Assembly (NCBI GenBank): GCA_964035545.1
Contig: OZ037767.1
Span: 9,496,581 to 9,560,580 of the forward strand
Direction of reading: 5' to 3'
From: Bugula neritina
Taxonomy: Eukaryota > Animalia > Bryozoa
DNA length: 64,000 nucleotides
The position numbers and the translations under genes are program-made. The notes under the pieces were generated by a model. It searched no databases, was not told the origin of the DNA, and was given only the letters and a program-made list of their open reading frames with translations. Shown here piece by piece: positions 4,400-15,375 of this stretch (the first letter of the stretch is position 1; each line of letters opens with the position of its first letter).

Positions 4400-5184
4400 C
4401 TGCAGGAGTAAAGTTGCTGCCAGACTTTGTGTATCATTACAGTGGTAGACAGTCATAGCTTGAGCACTGCTCCAAGTTCACATTAACCTACTATCATCAC
4501 ACACTCCTCACTGTAGCATTATGTATTATACATTAACTTTTTGTTTGCAGTCAACTTAACTGCTATTGTCAAGGAATTACACAGTAATCTCTTATGTCTG
4601 GGTATTGGCTTTTGTTATTTCAACAATATCAATATCAATACACTAATGTCAACAATGCCTGCTCAGTTAACTGTCAGTGTGATGACCTGGGCTGATGTGT
4701 AGGGAATGGTGAGAAAGTGCATTTTCAAGGAATGAATTTGAGTTTAAGAAACTCTTGTGTATTGAGGTTACACTTGGCATTTTTACTTTTAAATGTTTTA
4801 AAAAGTATGAGGTCCGTAGATTGATATTTAAAAATTAGTTTCTGCTAAAATAAATATAATTATGCAAACTAAAACAATAAATTTTTCAATGTTGAAAATA
4901 ACTTTAGAAACCTATAAAGTTTGGCCATATTGACAAGAGTCCAGTTGGCTACTGCCGTGGTGTGATTCTGACAGTGTGTCTGCATGTAGCTAAGATTATA
5001 TTTTATAATTTATTTATAATGCGATTCAAAATTGTGAAAAATTACAACCAAAATAGTTATAAGTACATGTGATGCATAATATGAGCAATAAATATAACAT
5101 ACTGGCATAACAAAACAGAAATCAGTATTGGTTTTGTAGTTGTCCATTTCCAGAAAACAGGCTACATAGGAATAAGCTGAGCAC

Positions 5185-8100
5185 CTACAGCTTATAGTCT
5201 TTTGATCTTGTATCCATGTAACCTTTAACCTTGGGCAATGACTCAAAGTTTTTTCTCCAGCTCTGTACTTTTGGCGACATTCTGCTCCAGATATCTGGAA
5301 CTACTGAATCTTCAATGATCTCCATGGTCCCATACAGCCAGAAATCAGCTATTGATAGCTAAAAAAAGTAAACCGCTGTTATTGTAATGTTTATTGTAGC
5401 ACTCACTGTGGCAGTTATTGCGGTTGTTCGAGTGTGACATACTGATGTATGGATATTATGAGCAACAAAAAACAGAATACTATTGAAATGGTAGCCTACA
5501 TGCCCAGAGTTATACGAAATATATACACTGTTATTTTCAACAGTATTCTTATAGCTTGCTCTAGTGATTATCAATATGTTCAGAAAGGCATATGGAATAA
5601 GTCCAAGATTTATAATAGTCTACATACAATTATTGTGGAACAGCTTGACCATTTTCGCACAGAGGTCTTTATTTCTCTGGGTATTTTAATTTATATGTTG
5701 CCTTAATGCTTTGACAGGATAAAAGTATGACCAAACACACCACCTACCTTTTTTAGGAGCCACATATCTCCAGTGATATGGTCATCTAAATATTTGTTAA
5801 GTAAGACAAGGTCTTTTTCCACAAACTCCTTTTCTTTTACTTTTCTTGTTTCTTCATCCATTTTCCCTGTGCCAAGTAAAAACCTGGATGGGAAGATGGT
5901 GGACCTGCAGTCTTCTATCATATACACTAGAGCATTACACTCTACTTCTTCTTCTCCTCCTGTTAGACCTGCAACACAATACTTTGTCTGTTATATACAA
6001 CACAATACTTTATCTGCTGTATCCCAGCCAATATGACCATTGGTGTTCACTCGGCTGGTTTATTTATGCTCCAGGCTTACCTGTCTCTGATCCTAGATAG
6101 TTTAGAATAGCCAAACTTGTGGTAATTTCTTCATCCCCAACTTTTAGCACTGGAAGAAATCCCATTGGAGTACCTACAGTTTAAAAACATGCCAGTAAAA
6201 TAGTTTACTATCATAAAATATGAAAAAAACACAAAACATTATCAAGTCTTCATTCAAGCAGTTGAGCCAACTTCATGCTTTTAAATCAACTTTGGTAAAT
6301 GATAATATTTTTACTGCGTTATAATTGGTACAATAGCATACTATTCTATCTATAGGCCTACAATATGTCTATGCTCTATATAGTATAAGAAATGGTTTTA
6401 AATTTTAAAGTACATATATGTAAATGTTATTATTTAAAGAGAAGTATTTATTTGCCTTATGACTGTGCAAAATATATCGTTTTGCCAAATAATTATTATC
6501 TTTCTTGACTTGATCAGCTATATTATACTTGACTGAAATGTTACATGAGCACTTTCACACTGTTGAAATTTTCAGGAAATATATATATATTATATACAAA
6601 CAGTGCTACAGTTAGCCACTATAAAAGTGTTTAGTAAAAAAATATATATACATCAAACAGATAATTAGATAGCGTTTCATTTATAATACAAACTTACTAG
6701 GTTTCAGAGCTGGCCACTCATCAAAGGTTACAAGTTCATTCTCATGGTCAACATCAGCATGAGCAAATATCATTCTGTACGGTTCACATCTTCCCCTTAC
6801 TCCGTCAAAGTATGTTAGCTTCATTTTCTCACCACACTTCCCTTCACTTTTCTAAGCATAGGTCATCAATTTTGAACCTCAGTTGAAAATTTTATAATAT
6901 GTGGTTCATGTAATCCACTGTAAACTTATATACTTCAGCTCTCAACACAAAACTTAAATATTGTTACAGCATATTAATTCCTTAATCTCAATTTCAGTAA
7001 ACTCAATATAGTTTGTCAACTTAATATTCGAAGTTATTTGTCCAAAATTAGTTCTTCTATTCTGAATAAGCTAACAATATTATACCAAGTATTGGGCTAT
7101 TTGAGGAATACACTCAAAGTTTTTCCTCCAGCTTTGTACTTTTGGTCCCATTCTTGTCCAAGCATCTTCGTCGAGAGAGTCAGTAATAACTTTCATTGTT
7201 CCGTACAGCCAGAAATCAGCTGCTGTCAACTGAAACAATATTCTAGAGTAAGTCCACCCTCAGCTATGATGTACATGAATGTAAATATCTCATATTAGAT
7301 AGTTGTTTTATAGCTAATGTACACCTTTCATACCTTAGAAGACAATAATACACATGGCATAGTAAACTAAGAGAATATAGAAACCAAATACTGTCAGAAG
7401 TTGACAAATCGAAAGCTAATAACTGATATAGATGATCCTTATAATTTCTGCTTATAGAGTAAAATTCATCAACTAAAAATGACTTGCCATTTTGTAGCTT
7501 GTTTTCAATTAATTTCATGTCATAACTTGCAAGTTTTAAAATGAAAGAAATAAGAATAAAAATTTGCGAAGCTTGAATTCGTATGTTTCTCATTAATTAA
7601 ACATAGCTGAAAACCAAGCGGCTGACTGCATGTGATGGCAGGTACCACATGTGAGCTGTAAATGATGGCAGGTGATAGCAGGTGACTGCATGTGATGGCA
7701 GGTACCGCATGTGAGCTGTGAACTATTTCATGTGTCACATGTTTAACAACTGTGTGACAGATATTTGGTGGCTCTATAAACTTTATGCCAAGCGTTACCT
7801 CCCAAACATGTCAGTAGTGCTATTAATTAGTGATAGTAACTTAATTATCACAATCTATAAACATTATTGCTTGTACTGTTATTCAGTTTTTATTCAATAT
7901 TGTTGGCTTTGTTGTGCTGTCATAACTACTATTACTAAGTGATACTAAATGTTGTCACTATACACACTTCAACAACTGTGTTTGCATTGTCTACTAATAC
8001 ATTGTTTTATTTACTTTGCTGTAAAACACACTCAGCCAAAATTAAATCCATGAGGTGTTGATCATCAAATTTCACTAAATGTTTACTAATGTTGTCAAAG

Positions 8101-11100
8101 CAAGCAACCTTATCCTAATAATCTGCTAATTCGTCAGGTCAAATAGCAACAACTCAATTTTAAAAAAAACCATTCGTACTACTATGATATTTATTTGATC
8201 TCATAAATTAAATTTTATGTTTTGCATTACGATATATGAAGTTTGACTTTTGCTGCTTTGTATTGAACATGAGCGAATATTGACATTTACAATATTTCAG
8301 TTGTAGCTGCCTTATCTAAACATTTAATCTATTTATTTAAACTATTTTAAACTGTAATGCCATGCAGTGGATGCAGTGCAATAAAGCCGTAATTCATAAA
8401 CTTTCTTCATTGTGCAATCTAACAGTGAAGTTTTACAAATAACATGTTTTTATGTCTGTGATATGTAATAAATAAATAAATAAATCAATCAATCAATCAG
8501 TCAAACACGAATTACACGAAATTTGCCTCACATATACATTTTATGTAACCTGACTTATTCTGTATCCTCAGACTTTATTCAATAAAGGCCAATGTTTATT
8601 CTGAAGCAAAAATACCTGCATGCATAGTGCATACTAATTAACTGCAACCATACTGCAAGCATATTTTACCTGTGTGCATCTTTTACTTGCAGACAGCTTC
8701 AGCAAATAACTATTACATATGCAGTTACTGGTATATCTCATTGAATGATCGGCTCATACATACCTTAGACAGGAGCCACTTGGATCCCGTGATGTTAGAC
8801 TCCAGATAAGTTGACAGGGTGGCTAGTGGCCCTTCAGCAAAGGCTTTACACTTTTCTTGCCTCGTTTCCTCATTCATCTTCTGTGTTTTAATATGAAGTC
8901 TGTTGAGAAAAAGGTCACCACTCCTACAGTCTTCTATCATGTTAACCATGGCGTCACAGGCTGCTTGCTCCATACTATCTTTCCCTTTAAGGTCTGCATA
9001 TACAGGTATACAATACTCATTCATTGCAGCAGCTGAAAAACTGTGAATTTTTATATCACCATATGGTTCATAGTTTTCATGAGAGTGCGAATCAGTTGCT
9101 TAGTAAAAACAGAAACATTTTACTCTCACAAATTATTTTATAAAATTTTTTTTGTATACCTACAATGATACACCATAACACTACTCTGGTAGCCTATTTT
9201 ACCTATTTTACTGGTAGAAATAGACAGCATATATGTGAATAATACACTATGGCATTGCAGTAACCATTTACTCTTTGTCCTAGGCAAATCTCTTTTCTCA
9301 TGCTTAGCCAACATAGTGATTTCTGTAAACTAGTAGGCTCTGAACTGTTGACAGAAGTGATAGACAAGGTAGCTGTGATAAAATGGCGAGATGAAAAGGG
9401 GTGCCAACACCTCGCCCCTCCTCACCTAACTTAACGAAAAGCTGTAGGGAGAATTCCTCTCACTGAATTTTACCATTTTCTATACTTAAATTACAGTATA
9501 GCTTAGTGAACCTTATGACTAATTTTTCAGTTGGCTTATTGAAAACTCAGTGGCAACGTGTAAAGCTGTTGAGTATTTACCTGCCACTCCAGCCAGGTAA
9601 CTGAGAATAGACAGACTAGAGAGTAGTTCTTCAGATCCAACTGTCATTATAGGAAGTGTACCCATTTTGGTCTCTGCAAAAGTTGAAGTTAAAAAATTAT
9701 GCTGCAGTTCTCTGAAATTGAAAGTCTAGAAAAGTTGTAGGTGTTTGCAGTGTTTTTTTGCACAGTATATTTGAAGTTTTGCATAATAATGCTGATGTTA
9801 TATTCTAGTGCTACAGCTATGCATCATTTAAATAAACTGCTTGAAAGCTAGTTCATTGCCCTTGTTACACTTGCTTTAGTGAAGATGGAATATCTACCAA
9901 TTCTATGAAGTAGGTCTATTTCTTAGAATAGGTGTTACATAAGGATTAATTCATAACTCATAATTCATAAGCCATTACACCACATTTATAAAATAGCCCT
10001 AAAACTAATGGTTGTTGTTATTACTCTCAGACTACACGGTGGAAAATAATAAATGAGTCATACTTGGTTTCAGTGCTGGCCAGTCCTCCAATGGTATGAT
10101 TTCATTCTTAAACTCAGTTTCCGAGTAAGCAAGTATCATAAGAAGAGGCTCACACCGACCCCCATCTCCAAAATGTGTGAATTTTATTTGACCACTAGGT
10201 TGAGCAGGCTGTAATCAATCAGCAAAAATAATCAGTTTTAGATTTTTTCTTCTTTTCCTATGCAAACACCAAACTCTCTTACTTTATTAGTGAATCTAAA
10301 GATTCCCAAAACAGCAAAATTCCCCATTCGATCAACCTTTTAAGATTAACTCAATTGAAGTTTTTCTAAATTTCCAGGCTCAATCATCATACGTCAACTG
10401 ACAGGCTGCTTAATGTAAATCTCTGTTTTAATAATTCAACTGCTTGATCTGTGAGTTTTGTTTCTTTTAGTAGTGATTTTGAGGGCTGAGTAAAAACAGT
10501 ATTTTTCAGCAAAAAGTTGTGATTTGAAAATGAATGTTGATTTTTACACCCACCAGCTTCTATGATGAATTTTAATATGAAGCTTTTGGGGGTGTAAGCT
10601 ATATTGCTCTACTCCACTTGTTTGCTTAATAACACGATTAAGATAGAGACGGCTGTATGGTTTAATCTACGAAATCTGAAGAGATTTAGCTGACAACTTT
10701 TATCTTATTCATCTTTTTATCTTAATCAGCATTGTTCTTATTTCAACCTTAAAACCTTCTGATTTCAATTGCACATATTAGCAGTGCTACATCTTACTGT
10801 GGAAGTATTACTTGCATAGTAGGCCTATGCATTTTCTATTTGAATTGCTTATCTGCAGAGAAATTTTAACATCCAAGTTTAATTGTTTAAGCAGCCTGAA
10901 AGCTAAAGGTAGTCTGTATTACAGCCTATGTGTTAAAAGAACGCAAACTTCATTGTATCTAGAGCCCATATACAGAAAAGATAGCCATTATTAGAAAAAT
11001 GTATACAGTATTGTGAGAGCATGTTTCTACCTGAGTTGGAGTTGTCTGCTTAGATTGTGCCTGCTTAGTTGTAGGAGCTGGTGGCGAGGCCCCTGCAGTT

Positions 11101-11135
11101 GTTACTGGTGCAGATTTACTTTCATTACACCCCAT
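5185..11135 (-). CDS. Tandem two-domain sigma-like glutathione S-transferase with N-terminal MGCxxS acylation motif (452 aa if spliced as one gene)
   Basis: Exons (minus strand) 11135-11031, 10208-10064, 9673-9581, 8993-8764, 7229-7086, 6851-6698, 6173-6081, 5968-5748, 5358-5185. All junctions are GT-AG and phase-compatible; total 1359 nt = 452 aa plus stop. Domain 1: IKFTHFGDGGRCEPLLMIL...DWPALKP...GTLP...LTAADFWL. Domain 2: MKLTYFDGVRGRCEPYRMIF...EWPALKP...GFLP...LSIADFWL. GST identity is secure; the fusion is inferred. Confidence 0.8.
7622..7720. repeat. About 60-bp tandem duplication rich in E-box-like hexamers, in a GST intron
   Basis: TGACTGCATGTGATGGCAGGTACC(A/G)CATGTGAGCTGT occurs twice, 60 bp apart. 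Confidence 0.75.
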
Positions 11136-11408
11136 GCTGATATAGGAACAGAGCTGATGGAACCTGACTTATTCAGACGCTACCCAGTAATACAATGACA
11201 TACAAGTGTCACCTCCGCTATATATTGCAATGGCTCAGTATAATCAGTTTTCCAAACTCACCTAATGTGTTTGTTTTTCATCTTATTTAAACACATATGA
11301 CTGGGCATTTTTATTCTATCGGATTGCCTGAAGATTGATTTCGCAGTTATATCAATATAATACAGCCTATATCTTTTTGTACTAAAATATCAGGTATTCA
11401 CAATCATG

Positions 11409-11881: not shown

Positions 11882-12444
11882 TCCACAATCAACAAAGACA
11901 AAGTTTATGTAGAGTAACATACTTCTGTATTTATAGTAATAAAAATGTGCAATTTATGGAGCAAACCTTCTGGTAAGATTATTTTAGTTATTGTAGATGA
12001 CAGGAGAACACAAAAATATTCATGTTTATTTAAGCTCACAGTTTTATTCAATTTCCACTAGACCTTTCTACCACTGCTCACAATCCCAAAAAGAGGCAAA
12101 ACCATAGTTAGTCAAGTCAATAGTAGCCAAAATATCGCAAACAACAATGAAAAGTCTGTGGCATCATAAAAACAACTTTAAATTAAATACAGTGTCAATA
12201 GAGAATGTGAAAAAGACAAATGCATAAGATGGATAAAAATGCCCATCACAGATCTACAATGTGAAATGACAGCACAAATTCAGACAATGTCAATAAAAGC
12301 TAAGCTCTTTGTTATGTAATGGTGGCATAATTTTGTTCAGTAATCATAACATATATTGTATTATAATGACCAAAGAGGAATGGTAAATTAACTAGGCTGG
12401 AGACAGAATACATATAAATGAGAATAGCCTAAGAGTTATATGTT

Positions 12445-15375
12445 TTACTGAGTTCCACACTGAACCCGTTGTCCATGACCTTGCATCTCATCATCACTGT
12501 CATACGCTTCACCATTCTGATGCTACAGAAATATGACACATGTATTATACCTGTATTTATCAATATTCAAATAGGGAGCATAACTCCTGTGCATTCAAAA
12601 TAATCAGTAAAGATTCACTTGATTGAACATGGTTAAATGCAAGTTGAATGTTTGACTCACATACATTATAATATTACTATTTAAAGACAAGCACCACCGC
12701 TTACCCGGTTTCTAGCTGATTCAGGGTTGTACTCGTGGAGCTCAACTTCTTCCATCTGGGAGTTGTGTTCCGCAGAGTTCTTTGGTGGCAAAGCCTTTTC
12801 TAACAACTACAACAATTGCACAAGATATGACCGCCACATCAAACTTTGTATAACGACATGCAATAGGAGGTGTTCAGATATGAGTATTGTAACATAAAGT
12901 GAACATAATCTGGTTTATACCCAAGAGTTGCAGCATATATGAAAACACATACATGTCACACAAAGACGTGACATGATGAAGGTTGAGCACTGTCCCTACC
13001 TTGATCTTTTCGGGTGTAAAGAAGCTGCTCTCTGGAAACTCCACCTCAAACTGTATAATGAGTTGTCCCTTCAGGAAAGGATTTTTGTGGGTGGGCATCC
13101 CCTCACCACTGATGGACCGGACAGCGTTGTGCTTTATGACTTGCCCTGAAGAACACCAGTTACAGCTGCAGGCACAGTACACAGAAGCAAGAAACAGACT
13201 ATCGTAGTAACTAGGCAGTTAGGTGTTGAATATTGCATATCCTATAAACATCAAAACAAAGTATTTGCTACGTAAATGTCCACAGTAGCCACACACCTGG
13301 CTCTTGTTTCAAGAACAGAGTTCGATCATCAAGTGTTTTTATAGTCTTCTCGAAACCGCACAGAGCTTCAGTGAGGGAAATAGACATAGTCATAGCAAGG
13401 TCAGAGCCGTGGCGCTTGAACAAGCTGTGTGGTTTCTCCTCAAGTATGATGATGACATCACCCGGTTCCAGCCCGGGCTCCTGGTCCCCTTCGCCGGTGA
13501 ACTTAATACGCTGGTCTTCCTTCATACCTGTTTAATTGATCGATTTATTACATGACACAGACATGGAAACATGTTGCGAAATTTAGTGTAAATATTGGCC
13601 ATAAGAAATAGACATAAACAAAAATGGAGAAAGAAAAGTAAAGTCAGAACTATATTGGATTATTTAAAATAAAAGATCATTTAAGTGTAGTTGACTTTAC
13701 ACTAGACTTATAGCATGCAACACGGGCTAGCTAAACCATAGCATCTAACTTTATTATTTTCAATATCTTGTTCATCATTTTGTTGTTTTGACTGCGGGAA
13801 CACATCTGGTTGCCTAGCAACATATGATGAATGTACAAACACTATAAAAGCACAGCATAGTGAAACAAAATGCCACAGATTGGAATTTGTTAAACACAAC
13901 TTTTCTCTGCACAAGTTGCTGCGCACCTTTGTCAATATGAACTTCTAGTATCTTCTTTTCTTGAATTGTCTTCTCTCCATTACAATCCGGACACATATAT
14001 TTAGCATTAATTTTCTCTCCGCGGCCTTTGCAAATATTACAGTGTGTTTGGAACTGCTGCACCATCCCGGGACCAATTTGCTGCATCCTGACTTGTACGC
14101 CTCTACCATTACATGGAGTGCATTTCTCTACAGCACCTTCCTTTGTGGCACCCACACCTACAGAGTAACAGTAATAGATACAGAAAAACAGTAATGGGTA
14201 CAGGGCACACAGTAATAGATACAGAGTAACAGTAATAGATACAGAGCACACAGTAATGGATACAGAGCACACAGTAATGGGTACAGAGCACACAGTAATG
14301 GGTACAGAGCACACAGTAATGGATACAGAGCACACAGTAATGGGTACAGAGCACACAGTAATGGGTACAGAGCACACAGTAATGGATACAGAGCACACAG
14401 TAATGAACACAGAGCCCAAATTTTGCAGAAAAAGATTTCCTGTTCAATATTATAACCCATGAAAAATTGTGGATGGTGAAAAGGTGTGAACAGTTACCTT
14501 TACAGGTTGGGCATATTATACTTTTTTGTAAAGCTAACTTCTTCATAGTGCCATTGTATACATCTTCAAGAGAGACCTGCAAGTGTTGCAACATATAATT
14601 AGCAAGAAAATTTTTTGATACCAACGGCTTTTTATACTTAGATCTCAAAAACAATTATTTACGCATGATGTAAAGATTAAAGAGACATTAGTGAAAAAAG
14701 CGTAAGCTGATATGCCAACGTTAAAACTAATACACTATGAGATGATACAAGGTGGGAGAAGATACAAGGTGGGAGATGATACAAGGTGGAAGATGATTGG
14801 TGAGCTAGTACAACTGGCACAGTTACCTTGAGTGGATGAGCAACATCCTTTCCCCTCGGGGGTCCTCTTTGCCGACCTCCACCCCTGCCACCAAAGAACA
14901 TATCAAACAGATTCGTGGGAGAACTGAATCCACCATCACTGCCCCCCTCTTTCAGTGCTTGCTCTCCACCTTCGTCGTACAAACTTCTCTTTTTAGGATC
15001 AGATAGAGTCTCATATGCTTGAGAGATCAATTTGAACTAAAGGGAAAAAGAGAGCAGTGCTCAACATTATCTTCATAAAAAATGCTCCCAATAAAATTTA
15101 TTAACATCACAATTATACTGCAATCCAAGGGCATACCGCTCTGTACACTGCATTGCAATAAAACGTAGTTTTTATATGCACCCAGGTGTGCTCATTATTT
15201 AGCACCTACTAAATTATCATAAATTTATACATACTTTTTCAGCTTTTTCGACATCACCAGGATTTTTATCAGGATGATATTTCAAAGCCATTTTTCTGTA
15301 GGCTTTCTTCAAGTCTGAATCGCTTGCATTTGTTTGTACTCCAAGTACATCATAATATTCAGTTTCTTTAACCAT
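12445..15375 (-). CDS. DNAJA1: DnaJ (Hsp40) subfamily A co-chaperone, DNAJA1/2/4-like
   Basis: Exons 15375-15235, 15036-14827, 14576-14498, 14157-13927, 13527-13297, 13145-13000, 12806-12705, 12522-12445. [13 protein letters not shown]...YHPDKNP (J domain, HPD motif), G/F-rich region, four CxxCxGxG-type zinc motifs, C-terminal domains, CaaX end VQCGTQ*. Confidence 0.93.
14160..14415. repeat. 21-bp minisatellite in a DNAJA intron, abutting the splice acceptor
   Basis: Unit CAGAGCACACAGTAATGG(A/G)TA, about 12 copies, degenerating into the acceptor (minus-strand CTCTGTAG at 14158-14165). Confidence 0.92.

Follow-up and report, generated by a model that had tools for sequence, protein, structure and literature searches.

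A double sigma-class glutathione S-transferase with a putative lipid-anchor signal, very likely encoded by a single nine-exon gene in the bryozoan Bugula neritina

The 64,000-nt stretch of the Bugula neritina genome analysed here (assembly GCA_964035545.1, contig OZ037767.1; hereafter the window) carries on its minus strand what resembles two neighbouring glutathione S-transferase (GST) genes. We rebuilt the exon model by script from the minus-strand sequence between positions 5000 and 11400. Nine exons, from 11135 down to 5185, join in frame to give 452 amino acids (aa) and a stop codon, and every intron has GT..AG borders. Exons 1 to 5 (11135-7086) form unit A and exons 6 to 9 (6851-5185) form unit B. 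It is very likely that the two units are one gene, encoding a single chain of two sigma-class GST domains with a lipid-anchor signal, and that this gene was born by internal exon duplication. RNA evidence comes from two RNA-seq runs of one 'symbiont metagenome' sample (X1 and X2), which we compare with a DNA run (X3). Contigs of the three runs, not reads, were placed on window positions 5150-11145 (5,996 letters).

Exon 1 (11031..11135) holds the start codon, the candidate dual-acylation motif MGCNESK, which fits PROSITE pattern PS00008, and most of a tether rich in Pro, Thr, Gln, Ala and Ser (35 aa). Record 7 of the X1 contigs covers it, and its joint to exon 2 (10208/11031) is present in RNA. 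An in-frame TAA stands 12 codons upstream of the start, if the 5' untranslated region (UTR) is contiguous. Record 7 extends 478 nt upstream past 11145; hence the 5' UTR is either long or has one or more upstream exons. Exon 2 (10064..10208) completes the tether (PAQPSGQ) and opens GST domain 1 with IKFTHFGDGGRCEP, in which, according to an alignment of the orthologue described below with haematopoietic prostaglandin D synthase (HPGDS), a His occupies the site of the sigma-class catalytic Tyr. Exon 3 (9581..9673; 93 nt) adds beta3-beta4-alpha3 with the G-site loop, exon 4 (8764..8993) adds alpha4-alpha5 with the motif IEDCRS, and all three of these exons are covered by RNA contigs. Exon 5 (7086..7229) encodes the end of domain 1, matches Pfam GST_C_3 (E 6.5e-5) and stops with ...IAQYL at the splice donor that leads into unit B; it is contained in X1 record 3 and X2 record 10.

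An intron of 234 bp (6852..7085) separates the units; we call it the fusion intron. Exon 6 (6698..6851) follows with the linker KSEGKCGEK and the start of GST domain 2, MKLTYFDGVRGRCEP, in which the catalytic Tyr is kept. Exon 7 (6081..6173; 93 nt) encodes the G-site loop of domain 2 and matches Pfam GST_N weakly (E 0.0078), exon 8 (5748..5968) encodes alpha4-alpha5 with a second IEDCRS motif, and exon 9 (5185..5358) ends domain 2 with a GST_C_3 match (E 6.1e-6) and the stop codon TAG (5187-5185). Exons 6 to 8 are covered by RNA contigs, and the last joint, 5358/5748, is likewise present in RNA. Searched with single exons, GST_C_3 thus matches the last exon of each half; most exons have no Pfam match, and a PDB search with exon 8 alone gave no meaningful match.

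The join from 7086 to 6851 keeps the frame and reads ...IAQYL|KSEGKCGEK-MKLTYF..., as a first-pass annotation of this stretch, made from the letters alone, had proposed. That annotation spoke of an in-frame linker exon. The linker is indeed in frame, but it is not a separate exon: its nine residues are the first 27 nt of exon 6, the first exon of unit B. The claims that the two halves are linked by a GT-AG intron, that the chain has 452 aa and that both halves share their intron positions and a 93-nt second exon were all borne out by the rebuilt model, the first of them also by joints in the RNA contigs. The three introns within each unit fall at matching codons, in phases 1, 1 and 0, and the translations of units A and B are 52% identical over 198 aa (BLAST). 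There are two units only: neither the window nor the 216-Mb genome holds further copies of this type of GST.

RNA contigs lie over the exons only, and all eight joints are present. At the joint 6851/7086, whose shorter side measures 143 nt, the depth is 254.5 in X1 and 46.9 in X2. In X1 this depth falls between those of the exons of unit A (276-315) and unit B (199-214), and the X1 bin depths over 6750-7149 are fully explained by exon bases. X1 record 3 spans exons 5 and 6 with joints on either side, and a single X2 contig of 423 nt (record 10) connects the last part of exon 4 with exon 7 by way of exons 5 and 6. Inside the fusion intron there are no contigs in X1 or X2 (depth zero). None of the joints is present in the DNA run X3; hence X3 holds no processed copy that would account for the joined form. 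In X3, about half of the contig depth carries small intronic indels at 6210-6225, 9475-9508 and 10242-10491, which look like a second haplotype of the sequenced sample. The junction-spanning RNA that the first-pass annotation had proposed as a check thus exists, with the exact joint, in contigs of both RNA runs, and the two sigma-type GST domains are carried by one spliced mRNA.

One could argue that the joint is an artefact of contig assembly, since De Bruijn contigs are sometimes chimeric, or that the AG at 6852 is the trans-splice acceptor of an operon whose two members lie just 255 nt apart. An assembly error would hardly fall exactly at a GT/AG pair, in frame, with 143 nt on the shorter side, and do so in the contigs of two runs, although these come from one sample. 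Cleavage between the units by polyadenylation, with an independent transcription start site or trans-splice leader on exon 6, had been named beforehand as the pattern of two separate genes; we found no poly(A) signal in the gap, and the RNA contigs have no loose ends or molecule ends at 6851 or within the fusion intron, and in particular no leader-like end. We know of no report of spliced-leader trans-splicing in bryozoans. With contigs crossing 7086|6851 and no leader-like end at 6851, we reject the operon. A cDNA and a gene model from two other species, described below, are independent of these contigs, and altogether an artefact or an operon seems next to impossible.

Exon by exon, RNA and window differ by about 1-8%. 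Synonymous changes make up 35 of the 40 differences listed: every one of the 17 in unit B, and 18 out of 23 in unit A. This mostly synonymous divergence means that either a sibling lineage or a divergent haplotype was the source of the RNA, and it agrees with B. neritina being a complex of sibling species. The excess of synonymous differences also means that both halves are under purifying selection.

The second alternative is that there are two separate GST genes and that the joined RNA arises in minor amounts by read-through between them (a "conjoined gene"). Most of the protein would then be of two kinds: one from unit A alone, with 240 aa and its stop at TAA 7082-7080, and one from unit B alone, with 204 aa and its start at the ATG at 6824. 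Two features of the sequence invite this explanation. The donor GT of the fusion intron overlaps an in-frame stop (TTG|GTA TAA), two codons past the donor of unit A, such that retention of the intron at 7085-6852 would terminate unit A as ...IAQYLV*. The Met of unit B, in turn, opens the sequence MKLTYF, which is how a GST canonically starts. It is also true that the absence of other isoforms cannot be read from contigs. Yet a minor read-through product should not be as deep as the flanking exons, as the joint is, nor should the fusion intron be empty of RNA contigs. The gap lacks a poly(A) signal as well: the first-pass annotation had reported no AATAAA, and neither AATAAA nor ATTAAA occurs in the 255 nt between the possible stop of unit A and the Met of unit B.

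Other species speak against two genes even more directly. We made a profile from the fourth GST exon in its two copies and scored 1.84 billion representative proteins with it. The best match (P0001 in our list) was XP_067942554.1 from the cheilostome bryozoan Watersipora subatra, a protein of 454 aa annotated as 'uncharacterized protein' and matched in two stretches; further profile matches were single-exon open reading frames from several other species. The Watersipora protein has the layout of the window's chain: MGCNESK, a tether, domain 1 with FTHF, a linker (DKQCAGSTAMSKDV) and domain 2 with LTYF. Pfam finds GST_C_3 in two stretches (1.8e-28) and GST_N (1.1e-11). Its exon map matches the window's, including the two 93-nt exons, at an exon-by-exon identity of 50-74%. 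The fusion intron of Watersipora is about 2.6 kb long. It splits the coding sequence at DKQ|CAG, a shift of three codons relative to the window, and its donor is not followed by a stop. A DnaJ gene lies upstream on the same strand in the Watersipora locus (L003), as it does in the window.

A search with the Watersipora protein added a third species with a protein of 653 aa (P0013), which starts with MGCDQSK and has three GST_C_3 stretches. It derives from a sequencing-run contig of 2,175 nt that is free of introns and has stop codons ahead of the ATG; this contig is therefore a cDNA of a three-domain form. The first-pass annotation had suggested a search for two-domain orthologues in related taxa; the Watersipora protein is one. 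There is also a single-domain relative. One of the single-exon reading frames led to three metagenomic contigs (L005, L007 and L009), which show a DnaJ gene, then an MGCNESK exon, then a single GST unit. This single-domain gene has matching intron positions, an acceptor 12 codons ahead of MKLVYF and a modelled product of 267 aa. The Met that corresponds to the apparent start of unit B is internal in this relative, with the MGCNESK exon upstream of it. A word-based search with domain 2 of the Watersipora protein returned two single-domain relatives only, and the nearest single-domain GSTs are 33-39% identical.

Two separate genes would thus have kept a join between them in Watersipora, where no stop follows the donor, and in the three-domain cDNA, even though the duplication is old by its 52% identity and by the tree described next. 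We consider two genes with a read-through product very improbable. That one gene encodes one chain with two GST domains across the 234-bp intron, as first proposed from the window alone, is supported by the spliced RNA contigs, by the syntenic 454-aa orthologue and by the three-domain cDNA, and the architecture is conserved. The locus is at the same time a warning for annotation, because a stop that overlaps the donor and an internal Met make a double-GST locus resemble two genes.

For the history of the gene we built a maximum-likelihood tree of the domains from the window, Watersipora, the three-domain species and the single-domain form, with ordinary sigma GSTs as outgroup. In this tree, domain 1 of the three species makes up one clade (support 96/97). 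All duplicated units together form a clade (96/93), with the single-domain form as their sister. It follows from this topology that the duplication is older than the split of these species. The first-pass annotation had read the two halves as a tandem duplication followed by fusion. The duplication part holds, given the tree, the 52% identity and the shared introns. A fusion of two genes is not needed. In the single-domain relative an MGCNESK exon is already joined to an acceptor that precedes the conserved Met by 12 codons; the history that assumes least is therefore that exons 2-5 were duplicated in tandem within a single gene, and two independent genes were never required. The ATG of unit B was inherited as an internal Met and does not mark where a separate gene once started. 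Most probably, an acyl-tethered single-domain GST gene duplicated its four GST exons in tandem in an ancestor of cheilostome bryozoans, and the copied acceptor of exon 2 then paired with a donor that had arisen at the end of the first copy. Between the window and Watersipora, the fusion donor and acceptor differ in position by a few codons; the linker around them is otherwise of low conservation.

Database and structure work on the protein was done with the Watersipora orthologue. The best PDB matches of both domains are HPGDS and other sigma GSTs from nematodes, insects and flukes, with E values of 1.5e-25 for domain 2 and 1.7e-17 for domain 1. Judged by these similarities, both domains are sigma-class and closest to HPGDS. 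In the alignments, Arg14, Trp39, Lys43, cis-Pro52 and Ser64 of HPGDS are retained in both domains; Trp104 is not kept. At the position of HPGDS Asp96/Asp97 the Watersipora protein has Glu-Asp in domain 2 (IEDCRS) and Glu-Glu in domain 1 (IEECRG), and the window has Glu-Asp (IEDCRS) in both halves. The two domains differ at the catalytic Tyr8 of HPGDS, which is kept in domain 2 (LTYF) and replaced by His in domain 1 (FTHF). Domain 1 also has a Cys at position 15, at the start of helix 1. Both changes of domain 1 are common to the window, Watersipora and the three-domain species.

The start of the chain is also conserved. MGCNESK opens the protein in the window, in Watersipora and in the metagenomic relative, MGCDQSK in the three-domain species, and all four match PS00008 and have Cys3. 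A tether of about 35 aa, rich in Pro, Thr and Gln, lies between this motif and GST domain 1. The Met-Gly-Cys start is a putative signal for myristate plus palmitate, which would place the chain on the cytosolic membrane face. Gly2 would be myristoylated co-translationally and Cys3 palmitoylated, and the disordered tether would provide a flexible link between the lipid anchor and the GST domains. There is also a Cys shortly ahead of several of the GST units: in GKCGEK-M in the window (6825-6851), in VVCPAP-M in the single-domain form (L005, about 4459-4494), and in TGCP-I (residues 38-40) and KQCAG... (residues 239-252) of the Watersipora protein. These residues could be a further palmitoylation site or a redox site, or they could be due to chance.

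Cytosolic GSTs are textbook dimers of separate subunits. We would expect the GST domains of the bryozoan protein to pair too, either within the chain or between chains. Paired domains would make an enzyme that is asymmetric, with a canonical active site in one domain and an altered one in the other, and such a GST might act on, or bind, membrane-derived lipophilic electrophiles or prostanoid-like substrates. The host animal is known for lipophilic symbiont metabolites (bryostatins). Given a real chain, an intrachain pseudo-dimer, as the first-pass annotation had it, has about an even chance of being right.

Several points weigh against the one-gene reading or the steps built on it. The evidence for the 452-aa chain comes from genes and RNA contigs, and its acylation, membrane location, domain pairing and activity are what we infer. 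The RNA comes from one sample that diverges by 1-8% and is other than the sequenced individual. Contigs prove presence only, and besides the joined mRNA there could be a minor isoform that keeps the intron and stops at TAA 7082-7080, or a transcript of unit B alone. The Watersipora protein is an automatic gene model. AlphaFold2 with a three-row alignment of the Watersipora protein gave no usable model (pLDDT 43.6, pTM 0.34); MAFFT spreads single-domain homologues and exon fragments across both domains, and a deeper alignment would carry false couplings. The ESM Atlas model of the protein has a pTM of 0.50 only. Finally, the inter-domain linkers of the three-domain protein have about 4-7 residues, which may be too short for consecutive domains in a canonical two-fold GST dimer.

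The last two points feed an alternative that concerns the pairing step alone and is compatible with one gene and one chain, namely that the domains pair between chains or in a non-canonical oligomer. A precedent exists in Leishmania TDR1, which has two GST domains per subunit but forms a trimer and leaves the canonical dimer mode unused (PMC4138524). A relative with an odd number of domains and such short linkers fits this alternative well, and a pTM of 0.50 means that there is no confident inter-domain packing to set against it. The two-domain forms point the other way, but not decisively: their linkers of 9-15 residues could span tens of angstroms, and both domains carry an acidic pair (in the window Glu-Asp, IEDCRS) at the position of the HPGDS dimer interface. 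We regard pairing between chains or a TDR1-like oligomer as a serious contender, if a little short of an even bet.

We can go one step further with a suggestion that is speculative and, on balance, unlikely. The proteins described here could be a lineage-specific, membrane-anchored multi-GST family, in which the number of domains changes between one, two and three through duplication of an exon block. Domain 1, rebuilt by the changes from Tyr to His and from Ala15 to Cys, would then be a non-canonical redox, ligand-binding or regulatory partner of the canonical conjugating domain. If this were true, the family would provide a natural, obligately asymmetric GST pair that is usable for studying cross-talk between GST subunits.

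The surroundings of the gene deserve a short description. The DnaJ gene (DNAJA-like) adjoins it upstream at 12030-13200 on the minus strand and its C-terminus reads ...RVQCGTQ*; AATAAA signals lie near 12045. One of its exons matches DnaJ_C with E 2.3e-5, which is below Pfam's own cut-off. The order of the DnaJ gene followed by the GST gene with the acylation motif is kept in Watersipora (L003) and in two of the metagenomic contigs (L005 and L009). Downstream of the double GST of Watersipora, and on the other strand, there is a cytochrome P450 gene (L003, 31568-33357). The intron between exons 4 and 5 contains two copies of a short repeated block, CACATGCGGTACCTGCCATCACATGCAGTCA, at 7600-7760 on the minus strand, and a (GATT)n/(ATTT)n microsatellite at 8459-8511, which was passed over as a repeat when the contigs were placed. 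A low-depth RNA contig matches 7668-7703 only and has unrelated flanks; the repeated block is probably a dispersed repeat that is expressed elsewhere.

How does the bryozoan protein compare with known systems? The closest are the sigma GSTs including HPGDS (PDB 2VCQ and 1IYH; nematode 4Q5F). These are the best structural matches and share the thioredoxin-like N-terminal part, GST_C_3 and, with domain 2, Tyr8. They differ in being homodimers of subunits of about 200 aa (about 23 kDa), whereas the subunit predicted here is a 452-aa chain of two domains with an acylation signal and a tether. Further differences of the bryozoan protein are the His that replaces Tyr8 in domain 1, the Cys at position 15 of that domain, and the missing Trp104. 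Within the bryozoans, the linker of the Watersipora protein has 14 aa compared with 9 in the window, and both linkers contain a Cys.

Two further systems resemble the N-terminus. Drosophila GSTS1 (PDB 1M0U) is a sigma GST with an N-terminal extension of about 45 aa (the match starts at residue 51 of the chain). Unlike the bryozoan protein, it has a single domain. Its extension is rich in Pro and Ala, is tied to troponin-H of the flight muscle and is not known as an acylation signal. The MGC signals of Src-family kinases and G-alpha proteins share the N-terminal Met-Gly-Cys, Ser6, Lys7 and the fit to PS00008, a resemblance of motif only.

Two GST domains in one chain have arisen elsewhere. In the ESM Atlas, the cluster nearest to the Watersipora protein by features is a GST family of 435 aa with 193 members, most of them from Oomycota. 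It combines GST_N and GST_C_3 and may be a two-domain GST of separate origin. Leishmania TDR1 (PDB 4AGS) and Tc52 of Trypanosoma cruzi are the better known case, in which duplication and fusion led to two complete GST domains in one polypeptide, of the Cys type in TDR1 (PMC4138524). Yet 4AGS is absent among the best 60 PDB matches listed for either domain of the Watersipora protein. The domains of TDR1 are omega-like, and TDR1 is soluble. The bryozoan protein is sigma-class with Tyr and His at its active sites, is encoded by an animal and carries a lipid-anchor signal; hence its origin is independent of TDR1. The tree, which places the duplication within the bryozoan lineage, together with the sigma-type domains equally implies that there is no common descent.

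In the literature we found no description of a bryozoan double-GST family, nor of any sigma-class or animal tandem GST. What was already known is that GST domains can stand in tandem in one chain, as in TDR1, and the Watersipora protein was in RefSeq without a name. The bryozoan gene would add to this two sigma-class domains (three in a relative) that are welded into one chain, with a lipid-anchor signal added and the catalytic residue of one half altered. It could serve as a natural system for studying the role of subunit pairing in GST function, the creation of repeat proteins through duplication of exon blocks, and the role of a membrane-tethered sigma GST.

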